From: Lytechinus pictus | Taxonomy: Eukaryota | Assembly: GCF_037042905.1 (NCBI RefSeq) | Contig: NC_087247.1 | Coordinates: 5,394,001 to 5,458,000 of the forward strand | Direction of reading: 5' to 3' | Length of the DNA stretch: 64,000 nucleotides | The notes under the pieces: model-generated | Database searches by the model: none | Seen by the model: the letters and a program-made list of their open reading frames with translations, nothing else | Told to the model about the DNA's origin: nothing | Part shown: piece by piece, positions 5,583 to 32,200 of the stretch | How the letters are laid out: each line of letters begins with the position of its first letter | Numbering within the stretch: the stretch's first letter is position 1 | Translations under genes and position numbers: made by a program

Positions 5583-8500
5583 TCAAGCGAAAGCGCCCAG
5601 TGTCAGATCATCTGTAGAAAAAATAAGCGAAGTATAAGAAATACAGAAGTGATTAATTCGATAAGTAAGCATACCAATTCCACAAGCTACTTCGTTGAAA
5701 TGTTTTGGTTATTTTGGTAAAATCATCACGGAAAACTAAAGCATCAAACATCATTTCCTATTTAAACGTTAACTGCTTTATTTCAAATTAAGAGTGCACA
5801 TACATTTACTGTTCACCTTGGTTTAAAGCTCTCTTAACAAATGCCAGAAGCTTTACGCATTCGTGCATGATTGAAGTCACATCATATACATAATAATAAT
5901 ATATAGCATTTATGAGGCGCCGATTATCTAGTTGCCTATTCGAGAGCACGCTAGATATTACTCTGGCTATAGCTCCAGCTGCTCCAGGCGCTTGGTGCAT
6001 TCAAGGAATAAATCCTGCCGGGTACCCATTCACCTTAACTGGGTTGAGTGCAGCACAACGTGGGTAAATTTCTCGCTGAAGGAAAGCACGCCATGGCTAC
6101 GAATCGAACCCACGTCCATCTGATTGAAAGTCAAGAGTCCTCTTACAGCTCGTACATACAGCTCGTACATGCAATGAATGCCGACAGAATGTAGAGTGGC
6201 CCGTTCTCTTTTTTCTGATGGAGGCCTATACCCCCGTAGTTTTGTTAATTATTGGTGTTCCTTTCAGAATAGCAGGTCAGACTACTTAAGCATTTCCTTA
6301 CGCGACGCTCTTATGAAACATACGTTTGAGTGTACTACTCACCATTGTCGTACTGGGTGCATCGTCCGGCGGCGTCACGATGTATGCACCCAGAAGCCCT
6401 TTGCACACCGCTAGTACCATGGTGAATGCAACGTCCAGTAGCATCTAGCTGGGTACAGCCACCTGTTGGGGCATATTGGATACAACGTCCACTGGCATCC
6501 TGGGTGGTACATCCGACAGCCGGAACCTGTTGAACACAACGTCCGTTGGCATCGCGTTGGGTGCAACCACCAGTTGGTGTATGCTGGACACAACGTCCAC
6601 TGGCATCGCGTTGGGTACATCCACCTGTTGGAGCATTTTGAACACAACGTCCACTGGCATCGCGTTGGGTGCAACCACCAGTTGGGGCATGTTGGACACA
6701 ACGGCCACTAGCATCACGTCTAGGGCACGTTCCCCCATCGGTCGGGAACACGCCTGGGGCACGCGGATATGCAGGAGCAGCGGGTGCATATGGAGAGCCT
6801 TGATGATAAGAGTCATCTCCGTAACCTGGATAAGATGGAGCATAAGGTCCAGTCGGTGGAGCATATGGAGACTGTGGGGCATGAGGAGCGTGTGGGGTAT
6901 TTGGTACGTGAGGTGCCTGAGGGGCATTTGGAACATGTGGAGTATGTGGGGCATGCGGCATTTGTGGAGCATGAGGAACTTCCGGGGCATATGGGGTCTG
7001 TGGCAGTTGTGGCGCATGCGGAGTGCGTGGCACACTCGGGGCCTGTGGTGCATGTGGAATTTGGGGGACCCGTGGTGCATTTGGCATTTGGGGGACCCGT
7101 GGTGCATTTGGCATTTGGGGGACCCGTGGGACACTTGGGGCAGATGGTGTGTATGGTGGCAGTTGGGGTGGTGGGGCACGTGGTGAACTTGGAGCTGGTG
7201 GAGCTGGTGCTCGAGGAAAAAGGGGAGGAGCTAAAACGGGGCTCCTTGGGGCAGGTGCACGTGGGCGTGATGGAATTGCTGCTCCTGGAAAGACTGGGAC
7301 ACCCGCAGAAGTCCCTGGTATTACGACACCAGTTGACGTACCACTCCCTGTGCTCCCATCTGTTCCGCCAGTAGCATCAACACCTACTTCTGTGCCATAT
7401 TCTTCCTCACTGCTGTCTTCATCACTACCGTATTCGTATTCTCCATCTGCTGCGTTTTCATATTCCGTAGTGGTAACATCTACATCCGAGATAGGTGCAT
7501 TGGCGGGGGCAACAGGCTGAACAACAGAAACTCCATCCGTTCCATCTGTGCCATCAGTTCCGTCAGTAGTATCAACGCCGGTACCCTCATATTCGTACTC
7601 TTCGCTGCTGCCACTATCGCTGTAACCACCATTTGCAGAGTTACTCAGATCGTATTCAGTAACTGTTACCTCAACATCGGCGTTGACACCTGGTACAGGG
7701 GCATATGCAGGTCCTCCCGGGAGAGGAGCTCGTGGTGGCACAATGGGAGCTCTTGCCGGGGGTAGTGGAGCCTGTGGAAAAGGTGCACGTGGTACCACAG
7801 GAGGGCTTGGAGCGTATGGCTGTCTTGGCGAAAGTGGTACATTTGGAACTGGTGCTCTTGGTACTGCGGGAGCACTTGGATAATATGGCGCTCTTGGTAC
7901 AGGAGGACTCGGAGCACGAGGTACTTGGCGGAACGTTTTATCGCATGATCCTTTGTGTTGTACTGAGACTGAAACGCCCGATTTTACGGAATCGTCATCG
8001 AGATCACATTCATTGTGATACGTGTGTCCGTTTGAACCGCAGACCGCTCCAGATCTGCTGTCACATGAGTCCCTTCGAGCTATGCAGAAAAACAAGACAA
8101 TATTTGATTTGCATATGAGGTACTTGTATGCGGTAATAATCTATTAAACTAAATATAACATGCCGCATACTGCTGTCCTTTGCTTTCTCCTACTATTGAT
8201 AATAGTTTCATATAATTTAATTCAATAACCTTTTGAAAGTCCTTCTGGACAAAAGTCCTCATTTAAACGTAATCTTATTTTGTAAACATTCTATAAATAT
8301 TGTAGTTGATAATCATTTCCTTGCTCCTATTCCGTACAGCTCGTTCTATACTTTGTATCAAGATGATATCCTTCGGGTATGAAGGTGTGCTGAAGCTTTA
8401 GACATGTTAAATTTAAACGTGTAATTTGATTGTAATTGTTTTATTCTGATGTTTACTATTTGTAAACTGATGAATCACGCATGAAGTAAATAGATTAATA

Positions 8501-8889
8501 GATTGATGAAAACAAATTAAATAATAATTGATTGTAATACAAAAACAAATTACACCAAGTAGGGTATTAAACCTTTATGCTTATTCGGTGGTGATTTTGT
8601 CCGTTTTATTAAAATCCAATATAAACACCTTTCAGGCTAGGAAATTGACCAAAATATAAGGTTTTCTTCTTTAAGGTCTCTGATACACAATGACTACATT
8701 CTTTATTTGATATATTACAAATCCAGTTCATGCATACGTATTGTGTATAACCACCCCAGTTTTGAATAGGCATACTTCTAAAGGCCTCAGAAGTCAAATA
8801 TTTTCAATTTAAATCAACTTACTTCTTGGCATTGCCTGGGTTAGGAGAGCTAGTGACAGGAGACATATTGCTGACTTTATCAGCTTCAT
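5583..8889 (-). CDS. g1: secreted Pro/Ala-rich acidic matrix protein with N-terminal 4-Cys Kazal-like domain and 7 C-terminal C-x8-C repeats (~610 aa)
   Basis: Exons 8889-8823 (MKLIKSAICLLSLALLTQAMPR, signal peptide, donor GTAAGT), 8079-6343 (TRRDSCDSRSGAVCGSNGHTYHNECDL...HKGSC; PRAP blocks; SSEEYEY; acceptor ctgcatag, donor GTGAGT) and 5611-5583 (DDLTLGAFA*, acceptor tttctacag). All phase 1 and in frame. Confidence 0.88.
5890..6140 (-). mobile_element. tRNA-derived SINE in g1 last intron
   Basis: B-box GGTTCGATTC on the minus strand; core GTGCTGCACTCAACCCAG..GGTGAATGGGTACCCGGCAGGA shared with copies at 27215 and 58795; (TAT)n tail. Confidence 0.75.
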
Positions 8890-11800
8890 GTCGATCCAAG
8901 AATCTGTCGAATGAAAATCAATGTAAATTTTTTTGAAGTCACGTAAAACTTTGAAATATTATTAGGCATCAATACATACTACGACTGCACGTTCAAACAT
9001 ATCAAAGGCTCATATGAGTGTATCGTAATACACGATAGATAATATTAAAAACTATAAAAGCTTAATGAAATTAAATATCAGACAGTCAAATATTCTGTTT
9101 TCCTCTTCAAGAAAAATAAGAAAGAGGGGAGAATACATGGAAGAAGGGAGAGGAGAAAATAGAGAGAAAGGGAAATGAATACAATAAATGATTAGTCTAA
9201 TGATGAAAAAAAGAACAGTAAGAGATAACGAAATTACAAGAACATGGTAATATACATCATAGATGAATAAAAATAACTGGATATAAATCTACAACAGATA
9301 ACGATACGGTAATCAACGCGTCATGGTTGTAAATAATGCATGGATAGTATCTGATGTGATTTTTTTAATTAATATTTTAGATGAACTGATGAAACTCAAA
9401 TTTCTGAAATGTATTGACCGTTTCAATTTTCAGGATTGAAAGATTACAGGCGAGAATGGCAGTTATATTCAATGTAGCTTGATAAACACTAACCATTAAT
9501 TAAGACATACCTTTCTTTGAAATCCAATATAAACAGGGCACTACACACAGTTCCAAACTCGCAGAAAAGGTTCAACCAGTATCCTGAAAATGTGGAACCT
9601 TAAATTCCTGAGATGCGAAAGATCATGAATGATGCTTTCCTTCGAGAAGGCACATCATTTATAGTTACAAGCACCCAATTATAAATCTTTAAAAAAATAT
9701 GCAAAATCAGTATGAACGTCGCATCTATCTCAATATAATTCAAGAACAAAAACACTCGTGATTCGACGATAGGGTAACCCTGAATGGCTTTACCAGCGCC
9801 AATATTTCTGATGCTGTGATTAACTTTGTTTGGTTTATCTCTACTAGATAGAGACACCCTCTCCTAAATTGCTAAACTATTTCCTGTAAATCATGGTCAG
9901 TTTAATTTATATGATTCGTTTTCTTTATGTAATTTTCATAATGTTTACCCCCTCACCCGAGTGGCTTATACAGGTTGTCATTGGCCCCGATTGATCATGT
10001 TGATAGGCATCGACAAATTCACTGAACGAATTATTGAACAAGCCTGCAGAACGGATGGATGTATAAATCCCATTGAATAGGGGTTAAAACAAACAATGGT
10101 TATCTTTCAAGATTGTTAGAAGGAAGACTGTCTACTTTGAGCAGGATAATATCAGCGAAGACTCGCAATTTAGAAGTTCCTTTCACTTCTTAAAATTGTT
10201 GTTGTCTCAGAACTGTGTAGGGATGGAAGTTTACCAGAAGTTTATTGACTTCAATCAGTAGAAGTCGGATCCATGGTTGAACAAGTCTTGTCTGATAGAA
10301 TGTGGAGCTAATCCAATTTCAAAACACGACGCTAGGATATTTTGCTTGCATGATATTTTTTTTGCGAATTTGCAGTTTATAAACACAATCATAAATATAT
10401 GAGAAAGAATGAATAACTATAACACATGATCCTATTATTAATTTATATATATATATATACACATATATATTAGAATATTTTGTTAATGACATGAAAATGA
10501 ATTAATATGTGTACACGACGGTGTGTTATGGTGTGTGTGTGTGTTTATGGATGCATTCGGGGGGGGGGGTCGATATGTTTAAAACATTTAATCAACATGT
10601 ACTGGCAACAAAGCTTTTCCGTTATCTGATTTGTATGAACAGTAGCGAGGCCCTCTTTGATTTTATCCTTAAAGTCTATTTGTTGGTTTAAGCCTTTCGG
10701 ATTTACTGGGATAAATATCACGCTTCAAGGATTGAGCATTAATGCCAGAGATTCAGGGGCGCTGATTGATAAGCATGATATGCACGTACAAAATATCCTG
10801 TGAGAATTCTTAACGAAATATAGTATAAAATACGAATTATTGAATATGCTAAGTATTGATCAATAAAATTGTCTATTACTTGTAACGTCTCGGTGAAAGA
10901 AAGGAGAGAAAAAAAAGAGATTATGGAAAGGAGAGAGAATGAGGAATAGTCACCTCAGAGAGGGAGAGAGAGAGAAGGAGAAAGGGCGATAAAATGACAT
11001 CTTCAAAAGTCATGAATTATACAAAATGGCAAATGAGATAGAGATAGATAAATAAATGAATATAGATAGATAAAAACATCTAACAGTTACTCGTATTGGC
11101 TTCGATGAAAAACAAAATAATTCTAAAAGTTAATTTGTTTTGTTAATTGAGACTTTATTGTAGGAAAATGCTTAACTTAAATTTGAGAATAATCCTACAA
11201 TAAATACTTAATTGGCAAAAAAAAAACCAGTAACTTTCATAATTATTTTAGATAGATAGAGAAAAGTGTTAAGTAAAATCTAATTTATTTTAAAGAAAAA
11301 AACCCTGAAAAGTTGAAATTTTGTCCTTTTCATGGTGTCCCCATTTATTTCCGGCGTTTTATGTTCTTTCATTCCATTTTGCCTAATACTTGGCCGTAAA
11401 GATCATTATGCTTACGTGTGCCCTGTTGCACTACCATTGTGTTATAACGTTGTCATTAAGTCTAATTATGGTAATTTGATGAGAAATATGAATCTGATAG
11501 GCTGGCATTATTACCAAAGAAGTTAACATTGGGAGCAAACATACTAATAATCGCGAAGGTTTTATACAAATATGTCCAACTCACTTCTTAATTTTGCTTG
11601 CACCCCTCTCATGCATCGCTCTGTCATCGCACTTTCCTCTCTCTCTCTCTCTGCCCATATTTTCGTTTTTATTTTTTCTACCAATTACATTTCCACTCCA
11701 GAATGCTTATGATCCAACTTTACACAATATATTCATTGTGGTTTCGTAACCTCCTTATTCCTTCGAGCTCTTAACCTCTTTCACTGGCGTTTTGTTTTGA

Positions 11801-12131
11801 TAGAAGTGACAATAAACATAAAGACGAATAACCAAATGTAAAATGGCTTATAACTAAATATGGGATCATTGAAAACACGTATTTCCGTTTTGACGTATAT
11901 TCTGATTATTGTTATTCTAGTTTGTTTGTAGCATCCGGTCAACAATTTTGTTCTGGACTTTCCCTTAAACAATTAAACGACAATTTAAGTAGCGCACACT
12001 TTAATAGTCCATTTATAACAATTGAGACTTTAGAAAGGACAAAGTCAGTATGAATGAATTGTCAAAAATCGCGCCTGTTACTTCTCGACATTGGTTCATC
12101 CCTTAACTGTATAGTATCTAGCCTTAAAACA

Positions 12132-12335
12132 CACTGTAAAAACGTTGTTTAGACGTTTAAGCGCTTTGTTTAAGCCCGTCACTCAAGCAATATTTGTTTA
12201 AAGTATTAAACAAGCTATTAAAAAATTGAACAGGTTGTTTAAACAATATTTAGAAATAAATAATTGCTTGAAAATTTAAGCAACTTGTTGTTACAGTGAC
12301 AGGCTTAAACATTGTCCATTATTTGTTTTACTGTG
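12132..12335. mobile_element. CACTG-ended (EnSpm/CACTA-like) MITE
   Basis: CACTGTAAAAAC ... GTTTTACTGTG with CA/CA 2-bp TSD and internal TTTAAAC-like subrepeats. Confidence 0.65.
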
Positions 12336-13001
12336 CAAGATAAACATGACTCGTAACTCCATGGTTCAATTGAAAACGATAAGGAAGATTGCATTCAAGA
12401 ATAAATGGTATACAAGTCGATGGAAATCAAATTTGAACACATTTATTTCAAATCAAAGAAAATAAATAAAATATAATGAGGTAAAAACAGAAATTAACGT
12501 AAACTACATGTAAAACAAAAAGAAAAGAAAAATGAACAAGAAATTTCGAAATACATAGAAGGAAAGAAAATAAATCCTTTAATGCTAGATGAAACTGATT
12601 TTGATTTCATATTTGAACACTTTTCTTAGTGTCAATATTATTCATAATGCAACAGAGCTATCTAAACAAAAAAAAATACTGTATGTCTATGGCAAATAAA
12701 TATATATTTCCCTGTTTGAATTCAAAAATTCCTTTTTTATAAAGATAATTTTAGTTTATTAAAGCCCTTTAATATCAAACATTTGATTTTAGACATCGTG
12801 TTTTCCCCTGTTTTTTGTGTGTGTTTGGTGAATAGACCAAAAAGGCTCCAATTCAATTTTTGTAATTATTTCTCAATCCCATTACCTTATGCATGATGAT
12901 ATTAAACTAATTCATATGAATTAATCCACACATAACTTAATACTTGTAAAATAAACAACTGCAACACCAAGGACACTTTGAGGCCAATATTTATAAAAGT
13001 T

Positions 13002-15099
13002 CTATCGTTTTCCAGACACTCCTCCGGAACATGCTTGACCAGAAGGATCATGGTTGCAACTTCCTCCACTGGGGGCATATACAGGACCTCCTCCTGGTGC
13101 TCCTGGTCCTGCTGGTCCTCCTGGGGCATAAGGGCGAGCTGGAGCGTGTGGTGCTGGAATCCTTTGCCCAGGTGCATTAGGTCTAGGTGCTCTTGGTCCA
13201 GGTAGGGGAGCACGTGGCCCTCCTGCAGGTGCTCGGGGCCGAGTTGATGGAGCACGCGGTCCTCCAATGGGTACACTGGGCCTGGGTACAGGAGCTTGGG
13301 ATCCAGGTGCAGGAGCAAATGGTCCTACAGGTCCCCGTGGAGCAGATGGACGCGGGCCCGGGGCATATGGACGGCCGGATACACGCGGTCCGGTTGGTGC
13401 ACGGGGCCCGCCCGGAGCTCTTGGACTGCCTGGAGCACGTGGACTACCTGGGACACGTGGACTACCTGGAGCACGAGGCGAACCAGGGCGAGGAGCACGT
13501 GAACCTCCACGACTACCACCAATCCCATCAGCTCCGACAGCCCCATCAGTCCCGCCATCTCCACCAGCCCCATCAGCTCCACCAGTACCGTCTCCAGCAT
13601 CAGCACCATCAACACCATCTGCGCCATCAATATCACCAGAACCGTAGTTATAGTACTCTTCACCACTACCACTGCTTTCGTCACTGCCGCTTGAACCTTC
13701 ACCTTCGTAATCTCCGTAGTCAGCATCAACTTCACCATCGTAATCACCAACGTCTCCTCCATCTCCACCATCCCCACCGTCACTTGGGGAAACGGGTGCA
13801 AATCTTGTTTCGGGAACTACTGGTGCGGCTGGTGCAGCGGGGACAGGTGCAGCCGGTCTTGGTGCAACTGGGGCATATGCAGGAGCTCTCGGAGGCTGTG
13901 GTCTTGGTGCAGCGGGTACGTATGTTGGAGCACGGGGCATCGGTGGAGCAGGAGCCCGAGGAGCTTGGGCATCTGACTGCTGATCTGAACTTCCACCAGC
14001 ATCGTTCCCGTCTTGAGTAAATGGACCACTACCTCCAGGGGGTCCCGGTGCGAATCCAGGCATACCTGGAGCATGTGGGGCATGGCTCGGAGGAAATGGA
14101 GCATTTGGATAGTATTGTGGGGAATTTGGCTGGTATCCTGGAGCAAATGGCACACCTGGTGCATGTGCTGGGGCAGATGGTGCATGAGGTTGTTGGGGTG
14201 GTGGGGCGTTAGGAGCTGACGGATAAGGGCCTGGAGCAGGAGCTCTAGGCGGTTGATAGCCTGGGTGTCCTGGAGTGGGAGCTCTAGGTGGTTGATTTCC
14301 TGGATAGCCTGGTGCAGGAGCTCTAGCTGGAGGATAGCCTGGTGCGTGTCCCGGTGCTGGAGCACTAGCAGGAGCCCCTCCTCCCCATGATTGGCGGTCA
14401 GCACCACAAGCGGCACCGGGTTTCCCCAGGTCGCACGAATCTCTTGGAACTGAAAGAAAACGGGCAATCAAATGAAGATAGTAAAGTAGATGTGGCCGGC
14501 TACATTCTAGACGCGTAAGCTTTTTATGGCACAACGAGAAATCAATTTGTTTTATGCTCTTTATTTGTATTCATTCCAACTTGTAAAATCATATTCACAT
14601 CGACTAAGAAAAATAAGTTACACTTGCAGATAAAAATACATATGTACAAAGCAGAGGCTGGACCTGGTTTAGGTGCAGCACTATTATGGATATATTTTTT
14701 TTTTCTGAAGGGACTATTGTCATGTCTTGGATAAGAATAAATAACCCTTCGAGTGAAAAGTGAGAGTCAAAACCACAAGACCATTTCGCTCTCACACCAT
14801 CATATTGAAAATGAATAATTTATATATACCGTATACCACAACTAAAAAAGCTATCAATTATTGATATTGGTTACATATCAATAATATAATAATAATTATA
14901 AAGTACGTTATAAAAGCATTTTGTCGCAAATAACTAAAATGAATTACCAACTTGGATTTAAAAAATTGCAAGGAACTATCATAAAAGTGTAAATCATATG
15001 ACTAATGCAATGAAACTCACATCTAGGAGACGCCAAAGAGGAAACACTCAGCGATAAAATACATGACAATATAGCGACAGTCGCCCTCTGCGTCCTCAT
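13002..15099 (-). CDS. g2: secreted Pro/Ala/Gly-rich acidic matrix protein with truncated Kazal remnant (~508 aa)
   Basis: Exons 15099-15021 (MRTQRATVAILSCILSLSVSSLASPR, donor GTGAGT) and 14449-13002 (FPRDSCDLGKPGAACGADRQSW...; acidic DYGDYEGEGSSGSDESSGSGEEYY; ends SCNHDPSGQACSGGVSGKR*; acceptor ttctttcag). Confidence 0.88.
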
Positions 15100-15506
15100 G
15101 ATGAACTAGTGCCTGCATAAAAATACGAACCAATGTGAAATTAATGTCAAGTCAATCAAAATGTTTTGAAGCATTTATTGCAGGATCAATTCATGGCAGA
15201 GAGTGTGCTACAAAACTAAAATATAAACTCATGGCGAAATTTAAATCCGGGTTAGAAAGACGGTCTTCAAGAAAATACATTGTTTTATCATAAAATTTCA
15301 ATAGATAATGTTAAAAAAAAAATGAAATACTGTAAATCATTAAATATTGTTTATGTGACACGAGTGCAAGAGACAAATATCCAATAGACTTACACGTGTT
15401 GTACAGTTTTCAGAATACAATTACTCTCTGGTATATTTCGCCGACGCTTCTTCCTCCCGAAATGCCCGGAATGGAAAATGTTGTCTTCTCTATCTGAGCC
15501 CAGAAT

Positions 15507-15516
15507 GTATATATAC
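15507..15516 (-). promoter_or_regulatory. Putative TATA box of g2
   Basis: GTATATATAC about 115 nt upstream of a GTAAGT donor (15393) closing a non-coding first exon. Confidence 0.5.
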
Positions 15517-16569
15517 CCTCTGAGATGTGTATTAAAATAATCATCAATTGCTCATCCACAAGGAATAATAGCAAGAAAAATTGAAATAAGTTTGAGAGCG
15601 AGAGAGAAACAAAGAAATGCCAAGGAAGGGGACCACGTGTTTGCAGCGGAAGCTGCCTGTTGTTCACGGTTATTGTTATGACAATCTATTTTTCACTGTG
15701 AACAGTAGCAACCTCGATGGCAGCTTCATGGTCAATACCGCAACTGCTTCTTACAACTTATTATTTTTAACATCCAGTTGGTTTATTTTTAATGTCTTTA
15801 TCTCTTCAATGGCGTGAAAAAAATCAAGAAAATAGCTTGATACATCCCAGCTTTAGGACAATGCAAGGAGTTAATGATATCTAAATTGTTCCCTCATAGA
15901 TCATCATCGAAACTAAGACAGATGCTACGCGATGAGGAGCAATGTCAGAATCGGCCTGTTGCTAATATTCTTTTTTAAAACCATATGCGCCTGAGGTAAT
16001 TAATATTAATTCATCATTTGACCAATCAAACTCTTCAATTCGAGATTCAACTTGATGTGAATGATAATGTATGTTGAAAATCATACTTTCATAACATTTA
16101 TTTACGCTTCATTGCCAATCTTTATTGAAAAATTCATTATCTTTATAGATCTATGAAAATAGATTTTATACATTACAAACACTGAAAAACAATTTGTTTC
16201 AAGATGCCCATTATTCACTTCTTGAGGTGTCTTGTTTGTCTAAACGTTTATTTTGTTTATCGTCCTCTTCTTTGTTTCTTTGCAATTTGATGACAATTTA
16301 TACTTTGCCACTATATACAATCATTGAGGTGTCTTTTCTCTGTTGCAACGATAATTCAACAACTACGTTAAAAAAGGTGGAATCCCACTCACTTTTTTAG
16401 TCTTATAAAGTTTTGATAGAGCAAAGCACAATTAAGACCACTGTGAAGCAAAAAGATGGAGGCGCAATGGTATTTGAAAGGAGGGATGCTAGATGAACTA
16501 TATAAAAATGACGTAAGAATAGAGGTAAATACCAAGACTTAGAATACTATTTTATGTCACTCTTTATTT

Positions 16570-17386
16570 GAAGAGTTTAGTTGCAAAAGGGCTTAGGTCC
16601 ACTTTGGACCATTCTGAGAAAAACCATGTTTTTTATTCTCACTTACTGCAATATTCTTATGAGAAACTAAATTGTCATGATGTACTACCCTATAATGTGA
16701 ACATAAAATTGGGTATAAAAGAAATCTACCTGTCTTCAATTTTTTCTATAAATTCTTTTAAAAATTATCATTGTGGACCTAAGCCCTTTTGCAAGTAAAC
16801 TGAAATGAATCCAATCTATTTTGATTAAAAAAGTGATTTTTATTTGCCACTTTTTTCACGTTTTCATGTAAATTTCAAATTTTCTTTGTTTTCATCAAAG
16901 CGACTAAAAATGTAAAGGTTTTGAGACAGAAAACAATAAAATTTATGAACAATGGACCTAACCCCTTTTGACAAATGAGCTCTTCAGAAGAGTTTGTTTG
17001 CAAAAGGGGTTAGGTCCACTCCAAGAAAATATTTTTTTTATTCTCCTATATTGTATATTCTTATGCGAAACAAAATTGTCAAGATTCCCTACCATGACAA
17101 CATAAAATTGGGTATAAAAGAAATCTTCCTTTATTCATATTTTTTTTAATATTCTTTTCCAAAAAATTCGGTGTGGACCTAATCCCTTTTGCAACTAAAC
17201 TGAAATGGACCTAACCCCTTTTGAAAAAAAAAGTGATTTTTCTTTGCCATTTTTGATCACTTTTAAATAGGAATTTCAACTTTTCTTTGGTATCATCTTA
17301 TAGAGCTACTAAAAATCTATACATTGAGACCAAAAAATCAAATTTGATGAAAAATGGACCTAACCCCTTTTGCAAGTGAGGTCTTC
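16570..17386. mobile_element. Head-to-tail dimer of a ~410-bp TIR element (possibly Sola-type)
   Basis: Units 16570-16985 and 16987-17386, each GAAGAG..TTGCAAAAGGG..TTAGGTCCA ... TGGACCTAACCCCTTTTG..CTTC. ATTT flanks both outer ends. Confidence 0.8.
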
Positions 17387-19712: not shown

Positions 19713-21886
19713 GGCGGCCTTTCTCGAGCTCTTGGCGGAATCAAATGTGGCTCTGGAAAGTCGTCCTAAATCGGATATATCGCTGTTACCATAGTAATAA
19801 CCAGAATTTTGCACACGGAACGCAGATTGAATGTTTCCGTTCCAAATGCGAAACGAAAAAAAATCTCATGTCACACAATTTACATTGCAGGACAGAGTTT
19901 TACGACCATGACGGCGGGCCCAAAAGTCTCTTCCAAAATCAACTACCTTTGTAAATAAGCGTACACGTTCTCGAACGAAAGGTCGGGAAAATCCACACGC
20001 GCACCGCAAACCCAAAGACAAACACAAGTCCACAAACATGGGTCCGCACTCAAAAATATTGAAAAAAACCCACCATGAATAGAGGCGAGATCTACCTACA
20101 TCCCCATCCCTCAAAGTTGTGCCATAACCATCTCTTCACACTCGTCTATTCATTATTTCCCTTCCTGTGCTCCCCTCTATTTTCTTCGGAGGCGTTAAAG
20201 TACCATCGACACCTTTTATGTCGACTTTACGATATAACGTTGTCGTCAAGTTGTCATACACAATTTTCTATGTCGACTTCGCGAGATTTTTTATCTCGCC
20301 ATCTCTACAAGTCGATTGCACTTTAGAGCTTCTGCATGTCTAGCACAGAAACGCCCTCACACTCACCAAAACACACAATAACACTTTATTTATTCTTATT
20401 TGGATATTTGTCCCTTTATCTCTCTCTCTCTCTCCCCCTCCCTTTCTTTTCATTCTCAGTTGATGTCACCCCATTTTCTGTCTCCATTCTCTCATCTAAT
20501 CGCTCTTGACGGTTTGTCTGGGTTTTTTTTTTTTTAAAGCATGCTTTACAAGGAATATCTTGGGGTATCTTTTCCCGTTTTATTATCTCTCTGATGCCCT
20601 TTGGTACAATATTTTTGTAATCATTTATCCTCTTGGTTCTCTTTGTACTCGCCTCTTTCATTCAAAAAATATCTGACATTCAAAGAAATTAAAGTCATAA
20701 TAAACGATTAGTTCGAATATAAATTAAATATATAATTCCACACAATCAACAGAAAAAAATCAAATAAAACAATTCAAATAAATAAAAGTACTAAACCACA
20801 AGCAGAATACATTATCATACAAGATCAATGCGGAAAATGAATATTAACAAAACATAATGGTAGTCACTCAATAAACTAAACAACGAAATCATAACGAAAA
20901 TTAGTTTATGATGATTTTCAATAAATAAAGATAAAAAAAAACGATGCAAAAATAAGTTATTATTAATGAATCACAAATGCCTATTATAATGCATGTTAAT
21001 ATATAGATGGTACGCCTCAATTATATGACAGAACTGGAACAATCTTTAGAATATATGTATACAGTGTATTAACACGATCCGATCAATTCGGGTTCGAAAA
21101 AATATATTACATGAGGTCACTTAATTCCAAGAACTTAAGTGACCTTAAGAATGAATAGACAAGTGTATACAACTACTAATAATGATAAACAGCTTTACCG
21201 TAGTGTGTGCATTTTTCAACAATGGAAATCAAATAAAACCCATTAACTGAAATTAAATTTTCGGGAAAAAAACCCATACAATTCTAATTGAATAATTTAT
21301 GCATTTTTCCCTATTCATTCAAATGTAAACATAAAAAGAGGGTGCATCACAAAAAACATGATGACTTATACCAAATTTATGTACGTTATATCCTGCAGAT
21401 CAATATGAAGACAAAGCCATAAGCTCCAAGGAGTCGAAAGTTTGTTGGTGATTGCACTTCGAACCTGATACAAAAGAAAAAGAAATATAATTAAGAATAT
21501 TAGAGAAAAATCAATGTCCATAAAGATGAAGAAATTCAGGTTTTTTTTCATCTTAAAAGACAGGGCAACTGTAACGTATTTAGTGATAGAAAATAACTAT
21601 TTGCCCAAATCCATAAAATAAAAATGAAGATAATCAATTACGTAAAAGCAAAAAAATCATGATTTTATTAATATTATTGATGAAACATAAATGTTATTGC
21701 ATCTGAACCTTTCGAATTTCATGGGGTTATATTAAAAAGTGTAATTTTGCAGAAAGGAACATTCTCATTAGTAGGAGTAGGGGTAAGCTGTAAACACATC
21801 AGTCACTAATTATTATTTTTAGCTTAATGTAAGAGGAAAATAATCTTGTTACTGTTGATAACTCACCTCGATTATGTTCTGCATGT

Positions 21887-24219
21887 CTAGTCATCTAAAA
21901 TAAAGGGGGAGAGAAAATAAAACAAATCAGAAATCAAGCACGAGCGTGCATCAAGCATTAAATATGAAATAATATATTTTTAATTAAATGATGAGACAGA
22001 TTTTCGTCTTACAAGGTAATTTTTTTTCGTTCTTTTTGATGTATTTCTTTACTTTTAATCTAGATTTTCAAACTGACAAAAATTCCTCGAAAGTTAAAAA
22101 ATTATATATTCCCCTTCGACGATTAATAGTAGACAGTGATTAATTGATTGAAATGGTTATACGGGATCATACCTTCATATCTAGCTTTTCATGACAGTGC
22201 ATTGTCGGACATTGTGAGGGCAAGATGAGATTTATATATTAGTTTTGATAGATGCCAATATATTATCATGATTGCATTGATTCATAATGTTGTATTTGTT
22301 TACAATAGTGTTTCTAATAGGCTAAGAAAAATCACCTTCACTTGAATTGTTAGGATCGTTCGCACCACCATCGGTGCAAATGAAATCAGAAACACCATCA
22401 TTACAAGTGCCAGTGCCTGCATCTCCACCTGGGACATTTGCGGTTCCACCATCGGCTCCAGCGGGGACGAAACCAGGAGTTCCAGCGGGTGAAAATCCAG
22501 GAACTATTCCAGGTGCTCCTCCAGGTGCTCCACCAGGTGCTCCGCCAGGTGCTCTTGGCAAAGCACGACCCACACTAGGGACATATGGTCGACTTGGAGC
22601 ATTGGCACGGCGGCGACCACCAGGGGCAGAATATCCAGGACTAGGAGCGAATGATCCAGAGGAAGGAGCAGCTGCAGGGTGTGGAGCACGAGGTAGGGAT
22701 GGGGCACGGGGAAGTGCACGTGGTCTGCCTGGAGCACGTGCAACTCCTACACTTCCACGTGAAGATGGAACACCAGATGTCGTGCCAGGAACACCAGCAA
22801 CTGTCGCAGTTCCGGTCCCAGCATTCCCATCTGCGCCGTCAGCGCCATCAAAACCATCGGCACCGTCAACTCCTTCTGTACCATCAGCACCCTCTGCACC
22901 ATCATATCCTTCGTAATCGTAAGCCTCTTCACTACTGCCACTGCCATCTCCGCCGCCACTTCCGCTTCCTGCACCAGCACCTGCACCGTCACCTGCGCCG
23001 GCTCCTCCTGCTCCAGAATCACCATCAAAATCACCACCAGCATCTGCGGCGAAGCCGGCGAAGCCACCACTACCCACTACTCCTGGAGCATAACCAACGC
23101 CTGGGATTGGAGCATTAGGTGCAAATGCAGGACCAGAAGGAGCGGGTGCAGCAGCAGGTCTTGGTGCGGCTGGTCTCGGTGCAGCGGGTCTTGGTGCCGA
23201 AGGTGTAGGAGCACGGGCAGGGGGAGCACGGGCTGGAGGTGCACGGGCCGGTGGGGCAGCAGGCGATGGAGCATATCCGGGAGCTGAAGGAGCTGCAGGT
23301 GCAGGCGCATACTGAGGTGTTGAGTCATGTGATCCCGAAGTTCCTCCACCTTGATCATATTGCGGACCAGATGGCGCTGCATATCCAGGTTGATATCCGG
23401 GTGCCACAGGGGCATGTGCAGGTGGGGCTGGGGCTGCAGGGCGTGGGACTGGAGCTGCAGGGCGTGGAACAGGGGCAGATGGACGTGGAGCAGGAGCTGG
23501 AGCCCTTGGATGTGGATGAACAGGCGCATTTGGAGCTGCAGCTGGACCATGACCTCCAACTCCGCCTGCTCCCCCAGATCCACCTGGAGCATAGGGGGCT
23601 GATTGTGTCCCCCCTGATGACGATCGGCAAGATCCGTAGTGAGAAACCGATACGTCTTGTCCAGTCCTAGATGCTTCTTTTTCCATCTCGCATTCGTTAT
23701 TGTATGATTTTCCATTGGAGCCACAGACGTTTCTTGTGTCACTCTCGTCACAAGAATCCCTTGGAACTACATAAAACACAAGACATAAATACGGCATCTT
23801 AGAAATTATATACAAAACAGCCACCATACACAAGAAGTTTATGATAAACAATTCAAACTTACGCTTTCCTTAAAACATCATTTTTGGAGCCCACTCTACA
23901 TTTATGCCCCACTTGACAAGCAAATCGCACATAATACCGTAATCCAACATTTATTATTTATTTTACACAATATAGTATTACTGATTACAGAAAAAATATA
24001 AACTTATCATCTTATGAAAAAATACGATTACATGAGACGTTTGCAATAATTTTGTCGACCTGGCTATTCTCTAAAATACATTTATATCTCTATCATAAAT
24101 GGCAATTTAAATCAAAGGCGATGTATGATATATATATACTCACTTCTGGGTGCACCAATTGAAACGGCAATAAGAGAGAATAGGAGGGCCAGGATAACTT
24201 GATGTTTTATAATTTCCAT
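21887..24219 (-). CDS. g3: secreted Pro/Ala/Gly-rich acidic matrix protein with N-terminal 4-Cys Kazal-like domain (~504 aa)
   Basis: Exons 24219-24144 (MEIIKHQVILALLFSLIAVSIGAPR, donor GTGAGT), 23766-22336 (IPRDSCDESDTRNVCGSNGKSYNNECEM...HYGSC; SSEEAYDY; donor GTGATT) and 21894-21887 (DD*, strong pyrimidine-tract acceptor). If the last intron is retained the protein ends GDFS* at 22322. Confidence 0.87.
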
Positions 24220-24330
24220 GTTGACACTGTTATGCAGCTTTACAAAATGTTAGAATTCGATTCTGCTCAAGCTTTCACTGCTTGTGGAGTTTGCTGAAAG
24301 CGAAATGGTGGAGAAGAACTATCGCCCCCA

Positions 24331-24340
24331 ATATTTATAG
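24331..24340 (-). promoter_or_regulatory. Putative TATA box of g3
   Basis: CTATAAATAT on the minus strand about 110 nt upstream of ATG 24219. Confidence 0.55.
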
Positions 24341-25929
24341 AATCGGCATATCTGCTATTATTTATTAACTAATGATGCAACATTTTTTTTTTTTACATGA
24401 AACCCTCAACCACATCAAAACAACAATGACTGAACTTGAGATAATCATAATGTTAATCGGTCTTGGTTGATATCAACACAGTAGCAACCTTAAAATATAG
24501 ACAATGACTAATATAAAGATTTTTGTGCACATTCTTCGATTTCCCCCGATTATCCTCGAATTATACATTATAGATAAAGAAATAGTTTCTTCGACAATAA
24601 GAAAAGAGTGGGATTAACACTTGATGATGCATAGTTTCATTCTTAGAAATGATTCTTTTTGTAGAAGGGGGGGGGGGGTCGGGAAGCTCAATGCCGGCAG
24701 CTGTATTGCGCAAGTAAAAGTGCCTCACCACACACATGACACATGATTCGATATCTGTAGAATCTTAAAATTCTGCATGAATTCTTACGATTATCAATCA
24801 TCCCCCTTAGGATAAGACAGAGGCATATCTCGTTAGGATTTAGATTTAGGGCCGGGGTAAACTTAACTCATAACAGTTTGCTTTCAACTTTCAACAAAAT
24901 GGTCTAGTTGTTAAACAACAACATTTGATATTATTTTTATTATATCATTGATTTTGTATATTCACAATAATAATAAGGAGTGTGTATGCCTACCATCTAT
25001 TCATAATGATCATCTTGTAAGAGGGGAAAATGCATCTTTTATTATTTCAACAACCGTCCAGGTATCTGGATTATTCGTTAATTACTCTAATATGCAGGAT
25101 CATGAAAAATGTTTTGTTTTGTTTTCATATGGATGTAGCGCTACCATTTTCATCCGAATTGTCCACCATATGACCTTAGTTTGTAAGAATTAAATTATTA
25201 ATTTCTTCTCTAAAATTGCTTACTTACTATTTTGTATTTTTTCAAAAGAAAGTGGAGTAAGTTCAGTGGAAAAGTTACCCCTTATCGTCCCCTTCTTTCT
25301 TTCGTCACCCTCGTTCACTACTTGATCTTATTAATACAGTAGCAATGTTAAATCAAGGTCTCCAAATCTGTCATAATCTGCATACGATTAAATGCATTAT
25401 CAATGTCAAAAATGGCAAGTAGAAAAAATATGTCAAATAATTATGAAAATTATGAATATCATAGTTGGAATGCCCTTTTAAAGATGGATTTGTACAAGTC
25501 TTCATGAAATCATTTTAAGTGTTTGTGAATTTATGATGAACAATTATTTTTTTTCTCATTTGTTTTAGTATAAATATATATTTTATTTTATATCATTTTA
25601 TTTTATTTTAATTTTATTTATCTATTTATTAATATATTCATTTATTTATGCAATTACTTATTTATGTTATTATTATTATTTTTTTTTTTGGGGGGGGGGG
25701 TCAGAAAAATATAGGATAACTAGTTATGAAGACAAGGGTAATATGTTGGGTTAATGCAGACAACAATTTTTTTTTTCTTGTATAAAACAGAATGTAGGTA
25801 ACATTCCTTAGATACATACATATTTTTCAAAAAACTGTTTTTATTCAATAAGGCAGTCTAATTCTTTTTAAAAGGTAGCATGAATCAAATATCAAGTAAA
25901 TGCAATTGACTCCTTTAGGTATCAATACT

Positions 25930-26080
25930 TCTAATGAATTTTTTTGTGTGTACAGACGTTTTTCAATTACATAGGATTATTTACTACTGGGACCGACTAG
26001 CGTTTAACGTCACCATCCGAAAGACGTGACCTTGGATTGAATCTCGAACCTCCGCACAAATTAGTGTATAACTTATCCAT
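25930..26080 (-). mobile_element. SINE fragment with Deu/Nin-like central motif
   Basis: Minus strand reads GGTTCGAG (B-box-like) then GTCTTTCGGATGGTGACGTTAAAC..GGTCCC, resembling the conserved deuterostome SINE core (recognised from memory). Confidence 0.45.
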
Positions 26081-27214
26081 GTAGCTAAGATTGTAGATTA
26101 TGTATACAGGCCAACGTCAAAACGTAGGTCTAGGTTTTAAACTTTTCAAGAAGAATCTTGATTTAGATTTCTCACTGAAATTTCAAAGCAAATATTGTTA
26201 CATTTTGTACATAAGCTGCATTCTATGCGAAAAATCCATCTTGAAACTTTCGAAGTAAATATTCAGCGATTCATCTTTACACTATCGGCCCATTTCAAAA
26301 CTTGACAGCACGGATGAGAAAGCCGTTTTAAATACAAAATTATCAAATAAATTCGAAGAATATCAATATAGTCATTTCCCCACACGAGCATTTAACTCGC
26401 AAAATCTTGCCCTGGATGTTTGACGTTGGCTCGTTTTCCATCTTAAGCGAGGTGGTTTCACAAGCTAAGTTAACTAAAACAATACAAGATGAGTTAGAAT
26501 TATTGGTAAATTCCGAATACAGTTTTTAATCAGATGGCAGGGTACCACCAGGTTAAAAAATAATAAAAGAAGGTGGAAAATGAGGGCGATATTAAAAACG
26601 GGAAGGATGAATAGTATAAGAAATTAGAGGTCTGGGCCGTGTTTTTTTCCCCCGCTCATTCAATCGAGAGATTGTCAAAATATCGTAGTATCACCCATAA
26701 CATTAAAAATTAAAAATGAATAAAAATAAAGTAGTTTGGCGAGACTTGTCTGCGAATCATTGACGATGTCACCACATATATCTATATTGAACATGTGGAT
26801 GAAAAGAATGGCGGCATTGTTCATGTTACATTGGTACTATAAAGACAAACATGACAACAACAAAAACATGGGAAAATACATGAATTTGCCGCATTTGAAA
26901 AAAAAACACACACATGCGGGTTCTTGTAGAAATTGCCTGCTATATTATTTACAAATGTTTTTTTGTTCAAACTTTTATCTGTTTACCTTCACATCCCAAG
27001 TCTCTCCTCCTCTCCCATCTTCCCCCTCTCTCTTTCTATCCCTTTGTCTGAACTAAAATTAAGCTGATAAAATTTTCTTATGAAATCACGATGTAATAGG
27101 TTACCTTCTGTAATTACATTAAAAAGAAGGTAAAGATTAATAATGAAAATAATAAAATTCCACTGTAAAGAGCGGTTACATATGCTTAACTGTTTGCGCT
27201 TAATACCTGATATC

Positions 27215-27380
27215 ATATTACTACCCCTGGCTGTAGCTCAAGCCGTCATACTTGTGTAACCATTCAACGAATAAAATATATCGGGTACCCATTTACCTTA
27301 CCTGGGTTAAGTGCAACATATTGTGGATAATTCTTGCAGAAGGAAATTGACACTCACCTGGAGTAGGATTCGACCCTCAC
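27215..27380 (-). mobile_element. tRNA-derived SINE (degenerate copy)
   Basis: CGGGTACCCATTTACCTTACCTGGGTTAAGTGCAACA matches the 5890-6140 copy; B-box GGTCGAATCC on the minus strand. Confidence 0.65.
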
Positions 27381-28232
27381 ACGTACTCACCACACTCATT
27401 CTCCTCCCCCCCCTCTAACTCTTTCTCTATCACACACACAAACACACTTACAACTTCACCTCTTTACTCTTGCACAGATGCATACACTCACACTGTCTCT
27501 TTTACTCTCATGTCTATCCACATTTCCTATGTTGCTCCCTCGTTCTGTCCTTTATTCCTTATCGTATCTCTATTCCTTTAACAATCGCTTCATTGCGAAT
27601 TAAAATAGGAAATGGGTGAATATGGGGAGGGGAAGTGAAGACTATGTATTTTGGAGGTGGAAACCTAGCAAGGAAGTAGAAGGAAACATCAACTATTCTT
27701 TCAGCACAAAGCGTCCATGTCACTCACTCTCTTTCACTCTCTCTCCCTCTCCACAAGATTTCCCTTATTGTCTTATTGTTACCGTCGTGTTGGGGACTTT
27801 TAGATAACGAAATCAATGAGGATCCTTGCAAATGATATAACGCTATCAATACGTTACTTAATACTCTTGATCAGTATTATAATAACATGTAGAACCCTAC
27901 CCCGCCCCACCACCACCACCACCACCAGAAAAGACAATAAATAATTAAATATGAATACAGAGACAAAGACATTCTAGAGAAATCAATAACTATTTAATTG
28001 GGATGAAACATACACTCCAATCAAAATAAATATATAAATACAAACAAAAGTACCAATAAAGAATAAATAATATCAAACAAAAGTGAAAGAAATAAATAAT
28101 GAGCGTCAGTGGAACACGAAGGTCAATGATAGAATAACGTAAACAGGAGAAATATGGACTCTTGTCGATGTTCCCGCTTCAGAAACATTGATCTCTTCGC
28201 GAATGAATTCTTTAAAACAAACCCTTTGCAAG

Positions 28233-28374
28233 ATGAGGCCCGCTTCATTAGGACCTTCAACTATGGTAACTTTTGCCATTATTGTAACTACCATGGAAAC
28301 CTTAATTGCGATTGGCCGCTGAGCCCTTGTTACCAAACATACCATAGTTTACAACGTTTTATGAAACAGGCGCC
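28233..28374. mobile_element. Short palindromic MITE (Harbinger-like)
   Basis: GGCCCGCTTCAT ... ATGAAACAGGCGCC ends with internal ATGGTAAC/GTTACCA inverted motifs. Confidence 0.45.
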
Positions 28375-29270
28375 ACTTCCGGTGCGGAGATGATTTTTAT
28401 ATTAGAATAGGTATATGGGGCCAGTGCAATTATGCATTGACGTGATAGAGGTGTAAATCTTGATTGCAGTATAAGAATTTTATAGTGACTTGTACAAAAG
28501 TATTCTATCCTTGCTCATCAAAAGGAATAATAATAATTTCGACAAATTATTTAAGACAATAACACTCATGTTAAATCACATTCCCTGTAATGACAAGCAG
28601 TGGAATTCGGTTTCTCAGACAGTTAAGACGGTATACTATTTTCAAACTACCTGAGATAAACACTATAAATTATTCTACAAACGAAAACATAAATAAATCC
28701 TAAATTATACAACAAAATCACCGTGTATCATAAGTCGAATCCATTCTTTCGGAGCACATTCTGTGGGGGGGAAAAGACAGTAGTGATTTTTTAATTGAAA
28801 GTCAAAGGTTCTCTTTTGGTATTATTTAATTAAAAAGCAACAAGTTTATTAATACATTTGTTACGATTTTTCAAATTATTATATTTTTGAAAACTTTTTC
28901 TAACTACTGAAGACGGGATGTAAGATCTTGTGGTTTACATATAAATGTGGCTTCTATGGTGATCCAGCTATAAACTATTCTTATAAATTTATTTCAAATA
29001 CGTTTTATTTCAGGTATTTTGGAAGAGGAAACACTTCCGATTTCATCTGAGAAAATCTCACAGGTACATTTATATCAATTATACAATTTCTCTTACTTCA
29101 AAAGGGTCGATTCTTTCAGCGTTGCTATTGCGGTATCGGACACAATATTCACGTAGCATTATAAGAAGAAGTAACTTAAAATGATTTCATATTTTATGGA
29201 GCTACTTACAAATAAATAAAGTTTGGTTGTTGCCGAGTTATGTCGCTCCAGTAATGGGCAATGGACAGTG

Positions 29271-32200
29271 CTAGTCATCTGTATGATATTGAATAAATGC
29301 AAAAGAATTTTTTTTTTTTTTACGATAATATTATTATACTATTTCGAGAAAGGCACGTGCGGAGAGAGGAAATCAAAATTTTTATTAGACTATTTAGGGT
29401 TAATGATTATAATCATTTTATAATGTTTGATATTGATGCAATTTACTGTATATAAGAAAATAAAATAGGAACATAAATTCTTCGAATCTATATGGATTCA
29501 TTAACCCCTTCAAATGAGATTGGTCATCAATTAATGTTGTTTTCAAAAGGGATTTAAAGGCTAGAAGACTTACCATTGTCATAAGCATTGTTTGATGTGC
29601 AACTGTTGCCAGGTGCGTTTTGAGAACAGCTAGCAGTGTCATATCTGAAACCTGGAGCGCCCGGAGCTGCCTGAGCTACTCCCGGTGCTCGTGGTAGAGC
29701 CGGAGATGCACGCCCAAATGAAGGGGCATACGGTCGACGTGGTGTATTGGGGATGAATGGGCGAGGAACTCGTGGAGGTGTTCCTGGCCGAGGTGGAAGC
29801 CCTGGAGGAGGAACACCAGGTCTACCAGGAACAGGCGGTAAATTGGAAACACCAGGTCCGGTAGGAGCACCGGCGATACCAGGTCCACTTGCAGCACCAG
29901 ATACTCCACCTGCAGTGCCAGTACCAGCATCAGCACCAGCGGGAGCTTCTGTTCCCTCCTCTACATCTGTTCCATCATTACCGTCATAGTCGTAGCTCTC
30001 CTCGCTGCTGTCACTGTCATCTCCATCAGTACTAGCTTCTCCACCTTCAGCTCCAGTACCGTCTACGCCATCTGCGTAATTGCCGAATGCTCCAGTTCCT
30101 GGAGCGCTTGGAGCGTATCCAACCCCTGGTGCGTTTGGAGCATACCCAACTCCTGGTCCGACTGGAGCGTATCCGACTCCTGGCCGAGAGGGGGCGAATT
30201 GTCGAGGAGATTGTGGCACAAATCCTGGAGCAGCAGGTCTTGGTGGTAAGGGGGCGAATCCCGGTGCCCTTGGTGCTGGTGGTAAGGGTGCATAACCAGG
30301 TGCTCCTGGAGAGGGTGCGTACCCTTGGGTATCATGCTCGTATCCCGACGTTCCTCCTGCGTATCCTTGATCCGGGTTGAATGATGTGGGATTATGTGGA
30401 GCTGGCGCCCTGTGAGGTGGAACTGGTGCTCTAGGAGCATGTGGAGCTGGAGCTCTAGCTGGAGGACGAGGAGCAGGTGCTCTCGCTCCGGGTTGGTATC
30501 CCGGGCGACTTGGTGCACGAGGAGCGGCTCGCCCAGACGAGCGGCAGTATTCGTAGTTGGTTACCTGTATATTCTGTCGAGTAATAGCATCTTCTTCTTC
30601 CAAGTCACAAAGGTCGTTATAAATCTTGCCGTTTGTGCCGCAGACCGGTCCCGAGGCACCCCTGTCACATGAGTCTCTCGGTGCTAAGGTAGAAAGAGAC
30701 AACGTAAAAAAAAATTATATAACAAAATAAAACAAAAAATGAAGATAACTGCCACACAAAACATTCGTTCTCGAAAGGAAGTAAAATGTGCAAAAGAGCA
30801 GTCAGAAAAATTAGGGAGATGCACATCCATTCAAAAATAAAATTTCATTTTCGTGAACGTAATGTAATTCATCGCCTTACAATTCCTATCCCCCAAACAA
30901 AGACATCAAAACGTATCTAGAAGCGTTCAAAGGGGAAAAAACACATTTATACAGTGCGTATCAAAAATAGTTTACACTTAGAAAAAATCCTGTAAAATTA
31001 TATATTTGTAATATCCTGAAGATTTTTCCACATTTTAACATTGGTACAGATCCACTTAAAGTGATTGGTTAACATTAGTTTGACTTTAAAAAATCTGAGC
31101 TAGAAGGTCACACTTGTCACCTGTGTCTGTGATATGTTACAAAAATAAAGCCCAGAAAAAATTGCGTTCGAAAATAATTATTTAGTGCTTCAAAAATTGA
31201 AATATAAAGTGACCGAAAACACCATCTTGATTTCATCCCATACACTTATGTGTACTATTTAGGCGTCTATAAGACGCCTATTTACAAAATCGGGGTTTGG
31301 CTTGTAGTTTTAGCTTTTCATTCTCAATAATGGTTGTTTTCAGGGTTTATTAGTTCTAATACATGCACTTGTACACATGTTTCATCTTGGTTTGAGAATT
31401 TTTTAAATCGGCTTCTCACAAAGTTAAACAATACCTTTAAGCAAATGACGATATAACTGTCAAAAAATATATCCGCCTGAATGAGCGCCACTTACTTTTG
31501 AAAAGTTAGTGAAAAATTATTTGCGCAAAACTCTGAAATAGTTATGCGAATAAAAGTAGACCTTAATCATGAAGAACACGAGGAATTTTGCTAGTAAAAT
31601 TGATTTGAAGATATCTTTTACCCTTTTCAACCTGTTTTCTTGGCCAAAACACTTCGAAGAGTGCATTGCGCCTCACCCCACTCCCCCACACACCGAGGCC
31701 ATCGTGACGATGTTTGCTTTACACGGAGATGTGACATAAAATGGCTTAGGCTTCATTTTCATTTTGTTAATCATTGTCAAGCTTGGGAAAAGTGTGGAGA
31801 AACAAGTATTAAATGAAAAATGAAAGGTAAACCCACTTTAAATGATACAAACTTAGTGAAAAAATGCTGGAGATGTCAGATATAAACTTTTGTTCAGATT
31901 CAGTTATGTCCTCAGGTCCAGCTGGCACAAAAAGGGTAAAGGTTGTGCTTACTTAGTGTTGAAATTTCAATTTGGGTCATAAAATTGTTACAAAATGCTT
32001 GAATGTATCCGTTTAATTTCAATTGACTAAAAGTGTAAGGGAAATGGATGAGAAATGTTTCGCAGGGTAAGTTTGATTTCGCCCTTTCCCCTTTACACAG
32101 CATGAAAACAAGCATTTCTGCGCAAACAGATTTCTGCGTGCTTTACAAAAATGGACAGTGCTCACTCAAGTGTAACATTCTGTCTAAACTTTAACTTGCA

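Follow-up and report, generated by a model that had tools for sequence, protein, structure and literature searches.

The typical Kazal domain has six cysteines (here C1 to C6, in order), joined 1-5, 2-4 and 3-6, and in two arthropod inhibitors the first of these bridges is missing. GmSPI-2, from the silk of the wax moth Galleria, has only the disulfides Cys5-Cys24 and Cys13-Cys39 (residue numbers), with seven residues separating Cys5 from Cys13; X-ray and nuclear magnetic resonance structures show it in the Kazal fold, and it potently inhibits both subtilisin and proteinase K. In domain 1 of CrSPI-1, from the horseshoe crab (PDB 3PIS; PMC3082530), the only disulfides are Cys1-Cys19, with Cys1 at P3, and Cys8-Cys35, and the domain lies in a substrate-like manner in the active site of subtilisin. 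Kazal domains have also been described from the mineralized tooth of Strongylocentrotus purpuratus, a sea urchin, where four proteins (Glean3:17588, 17589, 17590 and 22278) were reported to have a predicted Kazal domain and a fifth, 17587, to have none, with a different acidic Cys-rich N-terminus instead (Mann, Poustka and Mann, 2008; Proteome Sci 6:33; PMC2614417). Here we describe a locus that brings these two subjects together. In a stretch of 64,000 nucleotides from the sea urchin Lytechinus pictus (NC_087247.1, positions 5,394,001 to 5,458,000; hereafter the window), three genes, which we call g1, g3 and g4, encode proteins with N-terminal Kazal domains from which exactly C1 and C5 are absent.

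Kazal domains without C1 and C5

Together with a fourth relative, g2, these genes stand in a row, all on the minus strand. Measured from the C2 codon to the C6 codon, the Kazal domains lie at 7943..8065 (g1), 23627..23752 (g3) and 30544..30669 (g4). The Pfam profile Kazal_2 (PF07648, cut-off 22.8 bits) matches g1 with 38.1 bits (E 1.7e-9), g3 with 37.2 bits (E 3.2e-9) and g4 with 23.9 bits (E 4.4e-5). Scores for Kazal_1 (PF00050, cut-off 21) are over the cut-off for g1 (31.5) and g3 (29.6) and below it for g4 (15.8), and g2 has no Pfam Kazal match. Each of the three domains has four cysteines, at positions 5, 13, 24 and 45 in g1 and 5, 14, 25 and 46 in g3 and g4, in a numbering that begins with the first complete codon of the main exon. 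All remaining cysteines of the three proteins are in C-terminal C-x8-C pairs, and the total per protein is even. In a phmmer alignment to the ovomucoid third domain, the four cysteines are C2, C3, C4 and C6, with Asp opposite C5. The column seven residues after C4 (C4+7) holds Val in g1, Ser in g3 and Ala in g4, and no cysteine is found between the leader peptide and C2 in any of the three, as checked in the leader exons and a spliced contig. With respect to the typical six-cysteine form, g1, g3 and g4 are atypical members of the family.

A first-pass annotation, made from the letters of the window, had claimed that exactly the C1-C5 pair is missing from these three genes and that the two missing residues are partners in the 1-5, 2-4, 3-6 scheme; the cysteine positions and alignments bear out both statements, and the comparison with Pfam by HMMER that it had proposed as a check gave Kazal_2 scores above the cut-off in all three genes. 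The span that it assigned to the domains, 7943-30675, also fits, running from the last base of the C6 codon of g1 to the RDSCD lead-in of g4. Two points were missing from it: the non-classical spacing of C1 and C5 among relatives, described below, and the 2008 description of the family.

The pattern extends beyond the window. Three more four-cysteine genes are found 40-70 kb below it, at genome positions C3:5322915, 5339188 and 5354307. These paralogues, referred to here as 17590-type, have seven consecutive Asp in the helix, Asp at C4+7 and Ala/Pro-rich sequence after the domain. A genome search with the 50-amino-acid g3 domain returned only itself, and relatives were found by a Pfam family search and with the first 240 amino acids of g4. 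Our alignment comprised 39 different Kazal domains, taken from the window and sampled loci of the same genome, a set that samples the cluster rather than completing it. The four-cysteine pattern is present in six of six domains of the clade and in none of the 33 other Kazal domains. All 33 have a cysteine at C4+7, and all 33 are six-cysteine domains with a non-classical spacing, in which C1 lies 2-3 residues ahead of C2 and C5 lies at C4+7. All six four-cysteine domains keep C3, in a VCG motif, and C6 without variation. The exact absence of C1 and C5 holds in at least six genes.

A maximum-likelihood tree built from all 39 domains has the six four-cysteine domains as one side of a branch with support 98/99. 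The same branch has a Shimodaira-Hasegawa-like approximate likelihood ratio (SH-aLRT) value of 95 after removal of the N-terminal columns and nine helix columns. The alignment is short, and the placement of the four-cysteine group among the six-cysteine domains is unsettled in the tree. Since the six domains form a single clade, they represent one event, and the C1-C5 pair was probably lost once. The contrast of six against 0 of 33 is not due to chance, yet it counts as one evolutionary event. A hidden exon encoding C1 was considered and rejected, because in g3 a spliced contig joins the leader exon straight to the exon that starts just before C2.

The window domains have both the C2-x6/7-C3-x10-C4 spacing and the cysteine set of the two-disulfide Kazals, with the same pairing predicted. 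Like g1, GmSPI-2 lacks C1-C5, and the two share the cysteine spacing 5/13/24, with the last cysteine at 45 in g1 and 39 in GmSPI-2. GmSPI-2 is also, like the window proteins, part of a secreted structural material. Unlike the window domains, it is a free insect inhibitor of 36-40 residues, is not acidified and has been shown to be active. Domain 1 of CrSPI-1, a weak sequence match of g1 (E 0.0054), differs in being the first head of a two-headed haemolymph inhibitor, which binds subtilisin and for which furin is a proposed target. The presence of six-cysteine relatives in the same genome suggests that the pair was lost independently within echinoids, and the loss is probably independent of the arthropod examples. 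Another group of atypical Kazals, comprising Phytophthora EPI1a, LEKTI domains and ShSPI, is without C3-C6, with the fold kept, and activity kept where tested. There it is the opposite disulfide that is missing, whereas C3 and C6 are present in all six domains described here, and assignment to that class was rejected for this reason.

The best sequence and structure matches are to follistatin-type modules (agrin, follistatin, FSTL1 and SPARC/hevin), with E 2.8e-34 for agrin, summed over nine domains, and a template modelling (TM) score of 0.79 and Z of 7.4 for FSTL1. The six-cysteine relatives share the non-classical C1/C5 spacing with these modules, and the agrin module at residues 345-389 of 8s9p has no cysteine in its helix. 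Unlike the follistatin-type modules, the window Kazal has no EGF-like hairpin with additional cysteines before it, and it stands alone at the N-terminus, ahead of disordered repeats. A full follistatin/SPARC FS domain was rejected on the grounds that only 3-5 residues of the exon precede C2, with the leader immediately before them. When 1.84 billion representatives were searched with a profile, the result was mainly multi-Kazal proteins and no recognisable orthologue among the listed matches. About 30-40 of the 1161 Kazal cores in its best 150 proteins (~3%) are without C5 but have C2 and C6, a background figure only, obtained with a rough pattern rule and including some cases of a shifted C5. 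The C1-C5-less pattern is thus already known among Kazal domains and is not new.

Tooth-matrix identity, predicted fold and acidic helix

By their sequence and order, g1, g3 and g4 are identified as the collinear orthologues of the S. purpuratus proteins Glean3:17588, 17589 and 17590, which combine Ala/Pro-rich sequence, acidic Gly-rich sequence and a Kazal domain. The comparison was made by eye with printed sequences (Additional file 7) and peptides, and domain identity is about 85-95%. The g1 main exon fits the description of 17589. Model 17588 contains, in order, matches to g6/g5-like sequence, g4, g3 and the half-domain of g2 (window 13000-43400). This model, of 1982 amino acids, has internal leader peptides ahead of successive domains and must therefore be a fusion of several neighbouring genes. 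In 17590 and 22278, a poly-Asp four-cysteine domain is a near letter-for-letter match to that of the three extra paralogues. The printed 17588 and 17590/22278 domains keep the four cysteines and are without C1 and C5, and the 17589 peptide is without C5.

Several peptides identified by tandem mass spectrometry (MS/MS) in the S. purpuratus tooth matrix come from inside these domains. They include TYHNECDVEDDSSR and SGVSISVNHK from 17589, the counterpart of g1, LYNDKCDLEEEDAYTQQNIR from 17588, in the part corresponding to g4, and a peptide of the g2-type half-domain (PMC2614417). Given that these peptides are internal to the domain, the Kazal domain stays on the mature tooth-matrix protein. The tooth-matrix proteomics was done for S. 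purpuratus, and L. pictus is known here from genes and transcript-like contigs. Both 17588 and 17590 are phosphoproteins. The passages of the 2008 paper that describe the family call the domain 'predicted Kazal' or 'acidic Kazal_1', with no word on a missing disulfide (PMC2614417), and no further paper among those searched names these genes. Translations of the main exons give the window proteins 17-19% Pro, 11-19% Ala and 10-19% Gly, with isoelectric points of 5.3-5.7. Two protein database searches, one with the g3 Kazal region over a limited range of protein lengths (the S. purpuratus model has 1982 amino acids) and one with whole g4 that was swamped by low-complexity sequence, gave no match and are uninformative about absence.

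The predicted structures retain the Kazal fold, a short beta-hairpin with one helix and a C-terminal strand. For the g1 domain, an AlphaFold2 model based on a 39-row alignment in which six-cysteine Kazals dominate has a predicted local distance difference test (pLDDT) score of 84.2, with a strand at 12-14, a helix at 23-33 and a strand at 39-42. The g4 domain is predicted with the same topology (pLDDT 85.5). When the g1 model was compared with the PDB by Foldseek, all matches were Kazal domains (FSTL1, ovomucoid third domain, rhodniin, follistatin, infestin and SPINK1), with query-normalised TM scores of 0.65-0.83 and a probability of 1.00. For the g4 model, VIA-align gave Z scores of 7.4 (FSTL1) and 7.2 (infestin 1), with 45-47 of 47 residues superposed at ~2 Å. 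The acidic residues lie on the helix in the models.

Over the nine residues that follow C4, the net charge comes to -7 in all three 17590-type paralogues, -5 in g4, -3 in g1 and -1 in g3, compared with -3 to +2 in the 33 six-cysteine domains; five of the six four-cysteine domains are in the range -3 to -7. The exception, g3, differs by two codons (Met to Leu and Lys to Glu) from the g3 helix of the relative represented by the X4 contig described below, which reads ELEEE, as is also printed for S. purpuratus. The weak acidity of g3 in this genome is therefore a recent change. Acidification of the helix is real and specific to the clade.

The loop between C2 and C3, which in Kazal inhibitors would face the protease, has 7-8 residues, the canonical length, with Cys at P3. 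The P1 residue of g1 is Ser and that of g3 is Glu (Gly in S. purpuratus), after Asp at P2. In g4 and the 17590-type paralogues, P1 is Arg, the same in both species, and is followed by Gly at P1'. Ser, Glu or Gly at P1 after Asp at P2 look like poor residues for an inhibitor.

Gene structure and the surrounding cluster

The eukaryotic DNA of the window is AT-rich, and its exons are GC-rich. The long exons of the four genes are open reading frames (ORFs) of 382-586 codons, at 6335-8095 (g1), 13002-14534 (g2), 22322-23851 (g3) and 29554-30702 (g4). In all four genes, a short upstream exon encodes the hydrophobic leader only and ends with Pro-Arg and one base, followed by GTAAG or GTGAG.

For g3, the exon boundaries come in part from spliced contigs of two runs, X1 and X4. 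These contigs define the end of the leader exon (24144..24219) and the joint 23766/24144 across intron 1 (23767..24143; 377 nt, GT..AG). The intron is skipped both by a 2553-nt X1 contig, 99+% identical to the window, and by an X4 contig from a relative, ~95% identical; the X1 contig, from a run with kind and tissue unlabelled, is taken as transcript-derived. The long exon (22336..23766), given by the ORF and the spliced contig, has a GT donor at 22335. A loose end of the X1 contig was located in the window as exon 3 (21867..21894), which in 28 nt encodes the last two residues and the stop codon. Spliced exons of the 3´ untranslated region follow, one of them from about 21465.

In g1, exon 1 (8823..8889) carries the start codon and the hydrophobic secretion leader, ends with PR and one base, and is followed by a phase-1 GTAAG donor; its splicing is proposed from the sequence by analogy with g3. 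The main exon (6343..8079, with a GTGAGT donor at 6342) encodes, in order, the Kazal domain, an Ala/Pro-rich block, an acidic block, a Pro/Gln-rich block and seven C-x8-C repeats. In the last of these, a Cys occurs every nine residues from 451 to 573 in exon numbering (window 6346-6736); g3 and g4 have one C-x8-C unit each. Between the leader and C2 of g1 (8066-8079) there is an R-T-R-R furin-type motif, and g3 and g4 have P-R-x-P-R. The leader exon of g4 (32334..32403), when joined to exon 2, gives APRSPRDSCD, identical to the junction printed for S. purpuratus. The g4 main exon (29574..30683, with a GTAAGT donor at 29573) encodes the Kazal domain, Ala/Pro-rich and acidic blocks and one C-x8-C. 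All three genes have a phase-1 GT donor a few codons ahead of the apparent stop (6342, 22335 and 29573), which is used in g3. Because of these donors, the tails of the ORFs are not taken as protein, and by analogy with g3 the true C-termini of g1 and g4 probably come from a small downstream exon.

Gene g2 (13002-14534, with a leader exon from 15099) has only the C2-C3 loop left. Its N-terminal remnant (14385..14449) is the first half of the same Kazal type, in which C2 and C3 are kept and the rest is replaced by Pro-rich sequence. The half-domain is printed for S. purpuratus and has its own MS/MS peptide, indicating that the truncation is old and tolerated.

The region round the window (C3:5214877-5537927) is rich in Kazal domains, with more than 25 Pfam hits within 330 kb. 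Canonical six-cysteine Kazal exons are present on the minus strand at 35800-35949, 52997-53146 and 59342-59491, with the frame stopping right after C6. These exons resemble terminal coding exons, and an acidic or Val/Glu-rich exon of the same cluster lies upstream of each. In some genes of the cluster, a six-cysteine Kazal domain at the C-terminus may take the place of the N-terminal four-cysteine one. A further gene, g6 (41563-42091 and 42735-43361, minus strand), is Val/Glu-rich and Gly/Asp-rich and resembles the start of model 17588. Its Kazal domain is of the six-cysteine type (C-I-P-C-P, C5 present), is broken by a frameshift and is outside the four-cysteine clade. A multi-Kazal, agrin-like gene was seen elsewhere in the genome, at C14:9149541-9168182.

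A possible acidic matrix head or tethered inhibitor

We suggest that these genes encode a two-disulfide Kazal head that would keep C2-C4 and C3-C6. In this model, the non-classical C1-C5 pair would have been lost once, before the duplication of the family and before the split from Strongylocentrotus, with the beta-hairpin/helix fold retained after the loss of the bridge, and the domain, which is not clipped off, stays with the mature protein inside and beside the tooth mineral. Since Kazals of this kind can still be inhibitors, the missing bridge would be functionally neutral by itself. The domain would stand out by its acidified helix, with a run of up to seven Asp in the 17590-type proteins, and would most likely act as a small acidic head, stabilised by disulfides, where mineral meets matrix, either in contact with calcium or calcite or as a docking site. 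In the paralogues with Arg at P1, canonical protease inhibition could be a secondary activity at most. We give the proposal that the domain is an acidic mineral-matrix head a probability of about one half. In its favor, the helix charges set this clade apart, the P1 residues of g1 and g3 look unsuited to an inhibitor, the modules front long, disordered, phosphorylated matrix proteins that are found in and outside the mineral, and both g2, with half a domain, and 17587, with none, remain matrix proteins. A more specific idea, that an inhibitor fold has become a mineral-contact module in which the exposed helix, filled with Asp and Glu after the loss of C1-C5, has come to bind Ca2+ or calcite where the tooth grows, is less likely than not.

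Several observations weigh against an acidic head. The C2-C3 loop has the canonical length, the Arg at P1 in g4 and the 17590-type is kept across species, and conservation is no lower in the loop than elsewhere in the domain, as would be equally expected if there were a specific protease target. The cysteine pattern is compatible with inhibition, as GmSPI-2 and CrSPI-1 domain 1 show (PMC3082530 for CrSPI-1). The g3 helix in this genome is only weakly acidic (-1), and the fold models draw on an alignment made up largely of six-cysteine Kazals. An alternative to be taken seriously, to which we give somewhat less credence, is that the domain still functions as a canonical serine-protease inhibitor while attached to a matrix protein, with its acidity incidental or tuning specificity. 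Such an inhibitor would guard the tooth matrix against proteolysis or control a processing protease in the mineralisation space, as GmSPI-2 guards silk. The two-disulfide pattern does inhibit subtilisin and proteinase K in GmSPI-2 and does bind subtilisin in CrSPI-1 domain 1, the Cys at P3 and the loop features just listed are as expected for an inhibitor, and the predicted models superpose on structures of inhibitor-protease complexes at ~2 Å. This function is harder to reconcile with P1 residues that are Ser in g1 and either Glu or Gly in g3, preceded by Asp at P2, with Gly at P1' after Arg, and with the fact that proteins of the g2 type, with a half-domain only, and 17587, with no Kazal domain, are nonetheless abundant in the matrix. 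The Kazal-fold domains of agrin, follistatin and SPARC are mostly not inhibitors, which also weighs against a tethered inhibitor.

It is improbable that we are dealing with a relic in decay that has no function of its own, and that the loss of C1-C5 was the first step toward losing the domain altogether. In g2 the second half is indeed gone, and 17587-type proteins have no Kazal domain, but the four cysteines and 85-95% of residues are shared with S. purpuratus, the pattern is found in six paralogues, and the domain is present in the mature matrix protein. That the pattern is an artefact, with C1 in an unrecognised exon or cysteines removed by assembly errors, seems close to negligible given that the spliced contig joins the leader exon to the exon starting before C2, that leader exons are found in four genes, and that S. 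purpuratus shows the same pattern independently. Returning to the acidic head, the first-pass annotation had expected a retained Kazal fold, had pointed to the acidity of the helix after C4 and had raised cation or mineral binding. The g1 and g4 models, with PDB matches to Kazal domains only, agree with the first of these. The helix is indeed unusually acidic when set against the 33 six-cysteine domains, and the S. purpuratus orthologues, with MS/MS peptides inside the domains, provide the biomineral-matrix setting. The step from lacking C1-C5 to being repurposed, however, fails, since GmSPI-2 and CrSPI-1 domain 1 lack the pair and still bind proteases.

Our data add new detail on a known family and a known domain type and do not define a new kind of system. 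The detail is that the Kazal head of these tooth proteins belongs to the C1-C5-less, two-disulfide class, that it probably arose once in the family, and that it has been conserved together with an acidified helix. In addition, the old fused gene model 17588 is corrected to separate genes of two to four exons. The tethered inhibitor and the acidic mineral-contact head are two clean, testable alternatives, for which constructs of 45 residues are now defined. SPARC-like genes gave rise to the vertebrate mineral-matrix genes (PMC4336488). If mineral contact is indeed the role of the head, the tooth-matrix family would be an echinoderm parallel to the vertebrate path from Kazal-bearing SPARC-like genes to acidic mineral-matrix proteins.

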